Notes under the pieces: model-generated | Told to the model about the DNA's origin: nothing | What the model saw: the letters and a program-made list of their open reading frames with translations, nothing else | The model's database searches: none | DNA from: Haplodiscus bocki | Taxonomy: Eukaryota | Length of the DNA: 64,000 bases | Assembly: GCA_965655095.1 (NCBI GenBank) | Contig: OZ296651.1 | Coordinates: 27,404,001 to 27,468,000 of the forward strand | Reading direction: 5' to 3' | Made by a program: the position numbers and the translations under genes | Part shown: positions 23,601 through 25,632 of the stretch, in pieces | Layout of the letters: the number at the start of each line of letters is the position of its first letter | Numbering within the stretch: position 1 is the stretch's first letter

Positions 23601-25632
23601 TGAACTCACTAACCTATTGGAAATTAAACTGCAGCATGCTTCTTTGAAGCATCCACAAACAATAGGGGTAGTTGAAAGATCTCATTCTGCACTAAAGCGG
23701 ATTCTGAAACTCAATACAGACGAAAAATGGACAACGTGGTACAAATATGTTGACCTAGCAACATTTATACACAATACTTCGTATCATTCATCTATTGGAT
23801 GCACACCTAGCTCATTATTTCATGGACGAGAGCCTATTAAACCAATTGATCTGAGATTTAGAAGTCATACACTTGCTCAAAAAGAACTTACATCAGACTA
23901 TTTAGTCGATTTGCAGGATTCGTTACTGGAAAAGTTTTCGCATACCAAATCTCGCTTATTAGATGCTTATCATAATTATCGAACCTATTATGATAAAAAA
24001 GCAGCAGCAAAACCATTAGTACAAAAACAGTATTGCTTACTACTAAACCCTTCGTTATTGACACAAAGTGATTTTGCAGCCAAATCTTGCACTATATGGC
24101 TGTCATTATACAAAATTGAAAAAGTCTTGACAAAATCTAACTACTTGATTAGAAAAATTGGTACACCGTACACGCAATGTGTCCACCGCATACGACTAAG
24201 ACCGATAACGCCTAATTATGACGTAGAAGACATTAGTGTAACACAACAAGACTTCAAACCTGACCCTTCGTTGGGCAAATATCGATCTGAGCACGAAATC
24301 TTTGACGAAGCGCTTGAAACTTCGATAAACGAGGACATCATCGAGATGCCAGAAGTTCCGACGACTGAACATAACAGAACAGATGAAGTGCAACACACAA
24401 TACGTGGTGTAATAACGCCAGCCACGACCGAACAGCCCGCACCTGCCGGAGCTGCAGAGCCAACTGCAATTATTGAAGGGACAGACACGGTGCCCTCGTT
24501 CCCACCACCACCCGCACCTGGATCAGACGACACCGCGCGATCGGACGACGAAAATTTTCCTGAACCTACTTACCTAAACGACCCGATCCAGGTACACGCC
24601 ACAAGCTCTCAGCTCTCTCCGACGACCGAACGAACCTATCCTACAAAAACTGACGAGGGGGCCGCATTGTCGACGAAAGATCCTACGAGTCATCAACGGA
24701 TGACTAGACAGTCGCAAATACCTACTGCACCCACTAGTTCATTAACCAAAACTCCGCCACGGCAGAGACTTAGATTCGATAGCTATGACCATTTTCGGGA
24801 TATTCCCACGAGAAGAGCACTGACTGAAGGTGGTTACTATGAATTTCTAAATCAGCAAGAATTAGAGCTACCGCCATCAAAAGAAGAAAAACGCACAATC
24901 TTAGTAAAGACCGCACAAAGAACTAGACCTATTTCACAATCGGGGATACCAGTTCCTAACATAAGTAAGACACCAGAGAAGTCTATTTTGAAAAAACGGT
25001 ATCCCGAACGCTCTAATCGAGGACAACCTCCTCCGTCTAACGACATTTATTCAGCTAGTTTTCAACTGAATATGTGCGCTACTTCAATTGAAAGTGTTGA
25101 CCTTCCTGAAAATGTTCGAATTTTACAGGGAGACTTATTCCGAGACCAAACCGCAAATTTTGGACACTGTGTTTCATCTGATTTGGCAATGTCAGCAGGA
25201 ATTGCCACACAATTTGTGCGATTATACCCTGATCTGGAAAAATTACGCCTGAATTATCGAAATTTGAAGGCAGGATCTCTAATTGCGCACTTTTCAAGCC
25301 AGAATGGCAATTGGATTTACAATTTGGTAACAAAAAATAAACATTATGATCAACCGACTTATTATAACTTACGAAAAAGTCTCTGTCGCATGAAAAGTCA
25401 TATGTTAACGTATGGAATTAAAGAAATCAACTTACCACAAATCGGGTGTGGACTTGATAAATTAAAATGGGCACGAGTTTTGAATATAATTCTGTGCTTA
25501 TTTGCCAATACTGATATTCGGGTCAACATCTTCTTGCCGAACGTTCACGTGAATTCCAACCTTGACTATACTCTTCTCGCGGAAGAATATCCGAATGACG
25601 AGAAAACACGAAGACATATTCCACATGGCTAA
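20647..25632 (+). CDS. pol: Pol: RT, RNase H, integrase, Pro/Thr-rich linker and C-terminal TARG1-like macrodomain
   Basis: RT (LRILIDLR, KLDCSQAY, FMDDI, CEFG..FLG), RNase H (ILCDAS, KEFLA, LTDNK, ADFLSR), IN (H..GHLG..C..C, IDLVG, SDLG, VERSH), and a macrodomain in the last ~170 aa. Confidence 0.95.
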   Translation: MIIPLEEYENSTELKLSSSVVTVGKDNIVSILALNLNDHSVTFPKNKQVAVFQFLSPQEEEKLIEIGPELLALDKMKNGELLNQINQLLRVRNNRSSRQPKRPSPEYDKIWFPTPETCQNPENLPPLQKKIFDNISELQHRDSLNPQSNKKDKETFLKQFDWSKSSLNADQIAEMQYLLIEYYDIFAKHRFDVGYNTELKVKLTPAHDLPVYVQSPPTPIHLRDEILVELALMQYYGIVTLLPNSKYSSLIFAQRKPSGKLRILIDLRRVNHLLRNDYSDNNFPISNMTDAVHHFAGKTLFTKLDCSQAYHCVQMADPLSVQLLSFNFSSRTYAYTRLAQGLNKSVTGFSSFVRSYLDSCLAANLCTQFMDDIGCGVETFQQMIPTLRQIFDCLRKSGLRLTPHKCEFGMTSINFLGNTITPQGLKPETEKIEKFLKTMKLPATVRQVKRLVGFVLFFRSFLPNLAQNLMPWYKLLRKDVEFDLQDDHLKSFETIKKDLLQATKTTLRLAKPGQQYVILCDASYYSSGFVLMIEDYLVEKDGKTKQAYAPVSFGSQLFNTSQLKMSTYCKEFLALYFALEHFSHFIWGAEKPVIVLTDNKSLTSFFQSKSLHPSLWNFMDRVIAYNIVLAHIPGKANAAADFLSRMQTDPNESLELQLVDSIPMKQIEIDMKAKTPDASMLAIESVQEVEATPTVPKDLIEKIQSNDTLQSLIPNLDEILKSASNDQKPELYAIKRATEINSIQVKDPMNYFQVSNLNSKALDIETEQNKDPVLRKVMTWIDTGCNDDLTYASLELRKYYKHLTRLQMHKGILVRQFFDDVGKISHYQICVPKHLRKEVVYRIHNSPTGGHLGIVRTAKEFRQRFYFPGFTEFLTAYIKNCLSCSTLKRVSKRQLNPPLQPLSSEQLFPGDMMQIDLVGPFQSPIYKYVLSVIDVFSKYLFAIPLTSAHAGTIAKALVSIFFQHSYIPTTILSDLGTSFVAKLLHELTNLLEIKLQHASLKHPQTIGVVERSHSALKRILKLNTDEKWTTWYKYVDLATFIHNTSYHSSIGCTPSSLFHGREPIKPIDLRFRSHTLAQKELTSDYLVDLQDSLLEKFSHTKSRLLDAYHNYRTYYDKKAAAKPLVQKQYCLLLNPSLLTQSDFAAKSCTIWLSLYKIEKVLTKSNYLIRKIGTPYTQCVHRIRLRPITPNYDVEDISVTQQDFKPDPSLGKYRSEHEIFDEALETSINEDIIEMPEVPTTEHNRTDEVQHTIRGVITPATTEQPAPAGAAEPTAIIEGTDTVPSFPPPPAPGSDDTARSDDENFPEPTYLNDPIQVHATSSQLSPTTERTYPTKTDEGAALSTKDPTSHQRMTRQSQIPTAPTSSLTKTPPRQRLRFDSYDHFRDIPTRRALTEGGYYEFLNQQELELPPSKEEKRTILVKTAQRTRPISQSGIPVPNISKTPEKSILKKRYPERSNRGQPPPSNDIYSASFQLNMCATSIESVDLPENVRILQGDLFRDQTANFGHCVSSDLAMSAGIATQFVRLYPDLEKLRLNYRNLKAGSLIAHFSSQNGNWIYNLVTKNKHYDQPTYYNLRKSLCRMKSHMLTYGIKEINLPQIGCGLDKLKWARVLNIILCLFANTDIRVNIFLPNVHVNSNLDYTLLAEEYPNDEKTRRHIPHG
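25114..25533 (+). other. TARG1/OARD1 (Poa1p/DarG-like) macrodomain within Pol
   Basis: GDLF...HCVSSDLAMSAGIATQF...IYNLVTK...PTYYNLRKSL..MK.H....I..INLPQIGCGLDKLKW..V..II..LF....I.V.I is collinear with OARD1; the catalytic Lys (VTK) and Asp (GCGLD) equivalents are retained. Confidence 0.9.

Follow-up and report, generated by a model that had tools for sequence, protein, structure and literature searches.

The 64,000-nucleotide stretch of contig OZ296651.1 of Haplodiscus bocki analyzed here (positions 27,404,001 to 27,468,000 of the forward strand; hereafter the window, which contains no N) carries a long terminal repeat (LTR) retroelement of the Ty3/gypsy type, which spans 15.7 kb at positions 17745-33488. 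The intact pol open reading frame (ORF) of this element encodes 1661 amino acids (20647-25632, on the plus strand, as are all features below unless stated) and contains a reverse transcriptase (RT), an RNase H (RH), an integrase (IN), a linker and, at the C-terminal end, a macrodomain of the type of human TARG1, also called OARD1 or C6orf130. The macrodomain consists of 142 residues and is encoded at 25114-25539. An earlier note on this DNA, made from the sequence alone, had described it as the last domain of Pol, located in the pol frame at 25114-25533 and of the TARG1/DarG type. The translation of 25114-25533 was free of stop codons and in frame inside the pol ORF, in keeping with the note; the start of the domain was retained, and its end was moved a few codons downstream to about 25539, after which a tail of 30 residues leads to the stop codon at 25632.

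The assignment of the domain was examined by profile, sequence and structure comparisons. The Pfam Macro profile (PF01661) matched residues 1511-1614 of Pol with 24.7 bits, above its cut-off of 22, when the C-terminal 192 residues were scanned alone, and with 20.1 bits, slightly under the cut-off, when full-length Pol was scanned, this generic profile being a weak one. In a phmmer search of the PDB, human TARG1 aligned over the entire macrodomain with an E-value of 2.4e-28, and the runners-up were the macrodomain of DarTG (4.5e-5) and isolated DarG macrodomains (0.003-0.04). The AlphaFold2 model, calculated from an alignment of 76 TARG1-like sequences, had a mean predicted local distance difference test score (pLDDT) of 85.7, with values above 90 across the domain, and showed the order of strands and helices of a macrodomain. 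Foldseek returned 259 PDB matches to this model at E ≤ 1e-3, the eight best of which were all TARG1 (E 6e-17, target template modelling (TM) score 0.82-0.92), and the TARG1 crystal structures 4j5s, 4j5r and 4j5q gave target TM scores of 0.90-0.92 with root-mean-square deviations (rmsd) of 1.5-1.6 Å; complexes of TARG1 with ADP-ribose were matched with a TM score of 0.90 and an rmsd of 1.6 Å. TTHA0132, DarG (TM 0.83) and Poa1p came after TARG1. Among the best 50 of the 259 matches, all natural proteins with known function were macrodomains, and the others were designed hydrolases and a few uncharacterized proteins. The nearest named proteins to the macrodomain of the element were reptile OARD1, with 37-41% identity. 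These results confirmed, far beyond chance, that the domain in the window is a TARG1/OARD1-type macrodomain with the three-layer α/β/α macro fold. Encoded within pol of an LTR element in this and other copies, it is TARG1-like in type only, with no orthology to the TARG1 gene of the host.

The catalytic dyad of TARG1 consists of Lys84 and Asp125, of which DarG retains only the lysine and the bacterial hydrolase SCO6735 neither residue (PMC7050489, PMC9411070). Both are present in the element, as the earlier note had seen, and the domain is collinear with TARG1. In the phmmer alignment, K1563 of Pol (codon 25333-25335), within the motif LVTKNK, corresponds to Lys84 in the ITKKR motif of TARG1, a residue whose role was taken from PMC7050489, PMC9411070 and bioRxiv 10.64898/2026.03.31.715305; D1604 (codon 25456-25458), within IGCGLDKL, corresponds to Asp125 in IGCGLDRL. 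The residue numbers relative to PDB chain 2LGR were corrected for the offset of its 8-residue tag. The lysine column was invariant across the 76-sequence family alignment, which contained 5 invariant columns and 21 columns conserved at 90% or more, and the window macrodomain matched the family residue at all 26 conserved columns, the set being defined from 75 TARG1-like proteins. In addition to the dyad, the residues K50, R86 and R126, which have been reported to dock RNA on human TARG1 (preprint 10.64898/2026.03.31.715305), correspond to R1525, K1565 and K1605 of Pol. Judging from these residues, the window macrodomain is predicted to be catalytically competent. The second half of the name given in the note, DarG, is less apt, in view of the single catalytic residue of DarG and its weaker phmmer and Foldseek matches.

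The upstream part of Pol is that of a gypsy-type polyprotein. The reverse transcriptase (RVT_1) was found at residues 255-420 (21409-21906; Pfam E 1.9e-20), the RNase H (RT_RNaseH and RT_RNaseH_2) at residues 485-620 (22099-22506; E 2.4e-16 and 2.4e-14), and the integrase at 23137-23640, with Integrase_H2C2 at residues 831-888 (E 3.5e-15) and rve at residues 909-998 (E 2.9e-10). Between the integrase and the macrodomain lies a low-complexity linker rich in Pro, Thr and Ser (residues 1201-1489, 24247-25113), characterized by its composition and by alignment to the relative P0001. Its residues were 12% Pro, 11% Thr and 9% Ser and only 21% hydrophobic, and it was the fastest-evolving part of Pol. 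The Pro/Thr-rich character noted earlier was thus borne out, with a measured length of 289 residues in place of the approximately 250 given. Two islands in the linker, near FDSYDHFRDIP...GGYYEFL and ILKKRYPERSNRGQPPPSNDIYSA, were kept in P0001, which is 51% identical, and could be interaction or processing sites. The chromodomain (PF00385) that characterizes chromoviruses was not found in Pol at E ≤ 0.1 in the Pfam scan. The macrodomain is fused to the integrase at the level of the ORF, as had been claimed; the tethering of the mature macrodomain to the integrase, which the note had also envisaged, is not established.

The fusion was not confined to the copy in the window. Copy L002 was 98.6% identical over the full 15.7-kb element and copy L006 about 94-95% identical except at 27562-30112, and each of them encodes the protease (PR), RT, RH, IN and macrodomain as one ORF of 1888 residues. 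A search with the RT-IN region returned about 85 relatives with 38-99% identity, all of the RVT_1, RT_RNaseH, Integrase_H2C2 and rve type. With phmmer and a family hidden Markov model (HMM), a C-terminal macrodomain was detected in P0242, P0245, P0247-P0252, P0258, P0271, P0284 and P0293, remnants of it in P0243, P0244, P0303 and P0323, and an N-terminal half of it in P0266, a more distant relative. The names listed denote cluster representatives, with up to 121 members per cluster, and members with the macrodomain number in the hundreds. The fusion occurs in about 14 diverged lineages of Pol, with the macrodomain in frame both in close copies and in diverged relatives. Neither of the two sequence-level findings that the earlier note had named as refuting its reading, the lack of a macro fold and a position outside the pol frame in other copies, was thus observed. 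At least four assemblies or runs (ERZ26859043, ERZ25074608, ERZ25071366 and SRR25760728) contributed the loci, and ERZ26695794 the remnant of P0266.

In the RT-IN tree, all clear carriers of the macrodomain fell into one clade of 19 sequences with a Shimodaira-Hasegawa-like approximate likelihood ratio test (SH-aLRT) support of 100. The neighboring clades with long C-terminal tails had no macrodomain by the family HMM and no Pfam domain in these in-frame tails. In the free tree of macrodomains the element sequences formed three groups, from which independent capture in three lineages might be concluded; this was dropped as a firm conclusion, since the tree constrained to a single clade of element macrodomains had the better likelihood (approximately unbiased (AU) test, p 0.70). 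Owing to this result, the data allow a single capture by the ancestor of the clade, which is also the most parsimonious interpretation. A nested insertion or read-through into a host exon as the source of the domain was excluded by its presence at the same in-frame place in LTR-bounded copies at other loci. Several long proteins among the top macrodomain matches (P0008, P0014, P0015, P0041, P0109, P0144 and P0085) contained no RT or IN and were not counted as retroelement fusions. The empty result of a length-matched Pol search on the macrodomain region was an artefact: the cluster of the window Pol at 90% identity (88 sequences) is represented by a 1137-residue fragment without the macrodomain, and diverged macrodomains share no 5-mers.

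Comparison among lineages indicated that the macrodomain has been under selective constraint in most of them. In distant lineages the identity to the window was 74-78% in the RT, 59-68% in the integrase, 22-26% in the linker and 25-41% in the macrodomain. The macrodomain identity was 31-41% in the lineages in which the domain is well preserved, and a comparison of distant lineages gave 41%, against 24% for the linker; the macrodomain evolves fast, yet slower than the linker in the well-preserved lineages. Between L008 and L009, the macrodomains showed 38.5 synonymous and 23.5 non-synonymous differences, corresponding to a ratio of non-synonymous to synonymous rates (dN/dS) of 0.13 (Fisher 5e-13). 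Relatives that differed from the window macrodomain at 40-68% of positions kept 18-26 of the 26 conserved residues, and their substitutions steered clear of the conserved columns (P 1e-8 to 3e-4). At about 40% divergence, the macrodomain of P0193 had 57 differences with none in the 26 conserved columns (P 3e-7), and that of P0189 kept 25 of the 26 residues (P 5e-6). The reading frame of the domain was also maintained between lineages that have reached saturation at synonymous sites. Taken together, these sequence comparisons argue strongly for selective constraint on the macrodomain in most lineages. The synonymous divergence (dS) between L008 and L009 was strongly mosaic along pol, with 0.03 in the integrase core, 0.73 in the RNase H and 0.66 in the macrodomain, which points to recombination between lineages; the pair of the window and L006 was similarly uneven.

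Repeat search and alignment delimited a 5′ LTR (17745-18236, beginning with TGTAAC) and a 3′ LTR (32997-33488) of 492 bp each, with 4 mismatches between them over the 492 bp, and the same five bases, CTTTT, directly flank both as a target-site duplication (17740-17744 and 33489-33493). Reading of the sequence revealed a TGG-initiated stretch resembling a primer-binding site, TGGTGACAGG, abutting the 5′ LTR (18237-18254), and a polypurine tract, AAGGAGGGTAG (32986-32996). The LTR pair, target-site duplication, primer-binding-like site and polypurine tract are those of Metaviridae, the domain order is PR-RT-RNase H-IN with RT_RNaseH and Integrase_H2C2 modules of the gypsy type, and the backbone is of the Ty3/gypsy type without a chromodomain. 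The element is young and belongs to a recently active clade. Upstream of pol, a gag ORF of 415 residues (18723-19970) was identified by weak DUF1759, Ty3_capsid and zf-CCHC matches and by its position, and an aspartic protease ORF of 172 residues (20132-20650) by matches to gag-asp_proteas and Asp_protease_2. Here the protease is in a frame different from that of pol, and the window shows a one-base length difference from L002 near 20.61 kb; in L002 and L006, protease and pol are joined in the single ORF of 1888 residues. Because of this frame split, the copy in the window has probably lost full function, even though its two LTRs are nearly identical. No tRNA genes or Rfam families were detected within the 64-kb window.

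Downstream of pol, an ORF of 782 residues (30100-32448) was classified as envelope (env)-like by its sequence features. It contains an N-terminal hydrophobic, signal-like segment, 14 Cys residues, a basic site resembling a cleavage site and, behind it, a hydrophobic stretch of Gly and Ala similar to a fusion peptide, a long predicted helix and a C-terminal transmembrane segment. Homologues with 44-98% identity were found at the same position in six loci (L002, L006, L003, L008, L009 and L004). No Pfam or PDB match was obtained, and the AlphaFold2 model from an alignment of 7 sequences was unusable, with a pLDDT of 32. The ORF carries features of class I viral fusion proteins, its identity as env being not confirmed, and the family looks like an env-carrying, retrovirus-like gypsy clade. 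Between pol and this ORF, an ORF of 93 residues (26499-26780) without a Pfam match was kept in other copies, being 98-100% identical in L002 and L006. An ORF of 384 residues on the minus strand (28102-29256), also without a Pfam match, was variable among copies, with identities of 98% in L002, 43% in L006 and 35% in L003; its single weak PDB match was the COMPASS subunit SPP1 (E 0.008). The surrounding 2.5 kb (27562-30112) had no DNA match in the otherwise 94-95% identical L006, and this region looks like a swappable cassette.

Outside the element, the window contains a full-length, uninterrupted ORF for RLP24/RSL24D1 (11735-12223), whose best PDB match was human (E 1.7e-50), a fragment of phosphatidylserine synthase (57058-57780) and two C2H2 zinc-finger ORFs (35210-36714). 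Single-ORF genes for DcpS, ORC3 and a tetraspanin adjoin other copies of the element. In the PDB comparison the best solved relatives of RLP24 and DcpS were human, not fungal; as far as these genes tell, the host is a eukaryote, perhaps one with few introns and possibly an animal. A second, unrelated RT ORF (RVT_1, E 8e-25) lies on the minus strand at 8705-10808 beside an ORF of 340 residues without a Pfam match, and this region is probably another retroelement.

Compared with human TARG1 (PDB 4J5S, 4J5R, 4J5Q and 2LGR), the macrodomain of the element has the same minimal macro fold (TM 0.90, rmsd 1.6 Å) and is about 37-43% identical to it where the two align. It shares the catalytic dyad and the motifs GDLF, HCxS and GCGLD, and the positions of K50, R86 and R126 are likewise occupied by basic residues. 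Unlike TARG1, which is a free-standing cellular protein of 152 residues, it is a C-terminal module of Pol behind a disordered linker of 289 residues. DarG (PDB 5M3E, 5M3I and 7OMU), which acts on ADP-ribosylated DNA bases, is also of the ALC1-like class, with a fold target TM of 0.83-0.85 and the catalytic lysine, but its identity to the element is 19-21% and it has no dyad aspartate (PMC7050489). Moreover, DarG is bacterial, is partnered in an operon by the toxin DarT and carries a C-terminal domain that binds DarT, whereas the element macrodomain belongs to a eukaryotic LTR retroelement and is followed only by the 30-residue tail, with no DarT-like partner seen.

Macrodomains have also been acquired by viruses. 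Those of coronaviruses (Mac1), alphaviruses (nsP3) and hepatitis E virus resemble the present case in being erasers embedded in a replicase polyprotein, and they are thought to counter antiviral ADP-ribosylation by the host. They differ in being of the MacroD type with another catalytic mechanism, in having 11-19% identity and target TM scores of 0.64-0.73 to the element model, and in being carried by RNA viruses, whereas the element is reverse-transcribing and its catalytic residues are of the TARG1 type. TARG1-like viral macrodomains were found as BFVD structure matches with 23-33% identity (Foldseek E 1e-13 to 2e-16) in VP8 of Kadipiro virus, in thrips-associated virga-, negev- and flavi-like viruses and in a Cressdnaviricota protein; unlike the domain in the window, none of them is part of a retroelement or of a Pol-integrase fusion. 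Six IMG/VR contigs (L010-L015) also carry a TARG1-like macrodomain with 33-40% identity. Capture of TARG1-type macrodomains by viruses seems to be recurrent.

Among reverse-transcribing elements, epsilon-like endogenous retroviruses of ray-finned fish have been described as carrying extra ORFs for a macro domain or a CNPase (Basta et al. 2009, as cited in PMC4977317). According to that description, to which the comparison is limited, they too contain a captured cellular macro domain, but they are vertebrate Retroviridae and carry it as an additional ORF. Chromoviruses and other Ty3/gypsy elements with an add-on to the integrase share the LTRs, gag, the PR-RT-RH-IN backbone and the extra domain after the integrase, but in chromoviruses the add-on is a chromodomain and here it is a macrodomain of the enzyme type. 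The metazoan "ancient errantiviruses" (PMC13524379) likewise have a gypsy backbone with an env-like third ORF. In the open-access full texts that were searched, a macro domain in Ty3/gypsy Pol was nowhere described. It was mentioned neither in the 2026 survey of env-carrying gypsy elements, in which C-terminal halves of Pol were examined (PMC13524379), nor in work on the additional ORFs that LTR elements of rotifers carry (PMC5408684) or the Troyka Metaviridae/Gypsy paper (PMC12440569). The capture of accessory domains by retroelements and virus-borne macrodomains are thus already known, the nearest precedents being the fish retroviruses with macro ORFs and the RNA-virus macrodomains, and the fusion of a macrodomain to Pol is apparently undescribed.

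With a rough probability of 0.5, we propose that the domain is a packaged TARG1-type ADP-ribosylhydrolase that reverses host ADP-ribosylation of the nucleic acids or proteins of the element. In this proposal, a TARG1/OARD1-type domain of the ALC1-like class would have been captured once by the ancestor of the env-carrying Ty3/gypsy-like clade. Since the macrodomain is translated as part of Pol, its packaging with RT and integrase is expected: it would be made within Gag-Pol and would enter the particle alongside these enzymes. It would then strip the ADP-ribose put by host ADP-ribosyltransferases on the RNA genome, the cDNA (at bases or phosphate ends) or the proteins of the element, and this removal would keep reverse transcription and integration running, a counter-defence that may be comparable to that of the RNA-virus macrodomains. 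Enzymatic activity, packaging, substrate and the restriction of these elements by ADP-ribosylation are all points that we infer. The functions suggested in the earlier note, removal of PARP-deposited ADP-ribose from the pre-integration complex or cDNA ends and the steering of integration, are likewise plausible.

TARG1 removes ADP-ribose from proteins, where it is linked to Glu or Asp, from the phosphate ends of nucleic acids and from DarT-modified thymidine (PMC7050489, PMC9411070), and it was the only one among the hydrolases tested to remove base-linked ADP-ribose from RNA (2026 preprint 10.64898/2026.03.31.715305). Owing to this substrate range, to the env-like ORF as a hint of a life cycle like that of a virus, and to the occurrence of TARG1-like macrodomains in invertebrate RNA viruses, a role in the repair of nucleic acids or particle proteins appears the most likely one.

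Several observations weigh against the proposed hydrolase role. In the family of the window itself, the macrodomain had a dN/dS of 0.49-0.59 from 17-19 substitutions, which is indistinguishable from neutrality (p 0.22), and its non-synonymous rate equaled that of the linker; none of these substitutions fell at conserved positions. In the closest sister lineage, P0242/P0252, which is 95% identical in the RT and 85-91% in the integrase, the macrodomain is open but degenerate. It keeps 13-14 of the 26 conserved residues, EHN replaces GLD, the catalytic lysine is replaced by His in P0242 (L003:9001-13974) and by Gln in P0252, and the substitutions fall on conserved columns as often as expected by chance (P 0.15). 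The macrodomains of P0247, P0271, P0243 and P0244 are also partly degenerate. Since the domain of P0242/P0252 is open yet degenerate, TARG1-type catalysis is clearly dispensable for at least some of these elements. In addition, the macrodomain may be cleaved away from the integrase by the protease of the element. Total loss of function in P0242/P0252 is not proven, because SCO6735, an active bacterial hydrolase of the ALC1-like class, has Gln at the position of the catalytic lysine (PMC9411070), and it is conceivable that the activity was altered instead of lost.

The same degenerate lineages bear on a different possibility, in which the macrodomain would act mainly as a reader that binds mono- or poly-ADP-ribosylated chromatin, such as that at sites of DNA damage, and thereby anchors the integrase or the pre-integration complex there. 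The domain occupies the slot after the integrase in which chromoviruses hold their chromodomain (PMC13524379), the ALC1-like class includes readers besides erasers (PMC7050489), and the lineages without the dyad retain an open, recognizable domain (HMM E 1e-19 to 1e-22). These lineages, however, have also lost many of the ligand-contact motifs (GDLF, HCxS and GxGLD), and their substitutions show no bias away from conserved columns. The complete dyad, which a pure reader would not need, is kept in the window and in most lineages, and the fast evolution of the 289-residue linker makes a tight coupling of the macrodomain to the integrase uncertain. A targeting role of this kind appears unlikely.

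We regard as similarly improbable that the hydrolase is directed at host proteins and thereby protects the infected cell or the expression of the element, for instance by damping the PARP signaling elicited by cDNA ends or integration intermediates, or by reversing antiviral mono-ADP-ribosylation (MARylation) of host factors. The sequence and fold evidence for enzymatic competence would apply to it in the same way as to a packaged hydrolase, TARG1 is an interaction partner of PARP1 and takes ADP-ribose off proteins, even as whole chains (PMC7050489), and the env-like ORF suggests spread from cell to cell. The sequence does not discriminate host from element targets, but a domain of Pol would be scarce and enclosed in particles, and is better suited to act on particle contents than on a whole cell. 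A mere passenger, picked up accidentally from a TARG1-like gene of the host, of little use if any and in slow decay, is very unlikely: the degenerate domains of P0242/P0252, P0247/P0271 and P0243/P0244, the equal identity of the window to P0242 in macrodomain and linker (42% and 42%) and a window-family dN/dS of 0.5-0.6, not significantly below 1, would fit such a passenger, but the conserved residues kept in the window (26 of 26), P0193 (26) and P0189 (25), the dN/dS of 0.13 between L008 and L009, the in-frame retention across lineages saturated at synonymous sites and the hundreds of cluster members with the domain all speak against it.

Macrodomains of RNA viruses are the main evidence that ADP-ribosylation serves as an antiviral weapon, and we know of no comparable case established for LTR retroelements. 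The presence of the fusion throughout a clade suggests that these elements have to undo ADP-ribosylation by their host. As a tentative possibility, to which we assign rather low odds, ADP-ribosylation of retroelement RNA or cDNA, linked to bases or to ends, or of particle proteins may be a form of restriction in this probably animal host that the env-carrying gypsy-like clade has answered with a TARG1-type eraser borne by Pol; if true, this would be the retroelement counterpart of the conflict between PARPs and macrodomains in RNA viruses. The choice of the TARG1 class by an element that passes through RNA and single-stranded DNA is suggestive, because TARG1 has been reported to remove base-linked ADP-ribose from RNA selectively and also removes thymidine-linked ADP-ribose from DNA. 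The clade would also offer a natural set of proteins for testing, with the dyad intact, with the lysine only, or with His or Gln at the catalytic position; GSGLD/GSGRD and GNGYD are further natural variants among the relatives. As a reader, the domain would exemplify a novel type of module for the targeting of integration. As a hydrolase of the TARG1 type whose active site is intact and has been kept under constraint across a diversified, recently active clade of virus-like retrotransposons, it would indicate that ADP-ribosylation hinders reverse transcription or integration.

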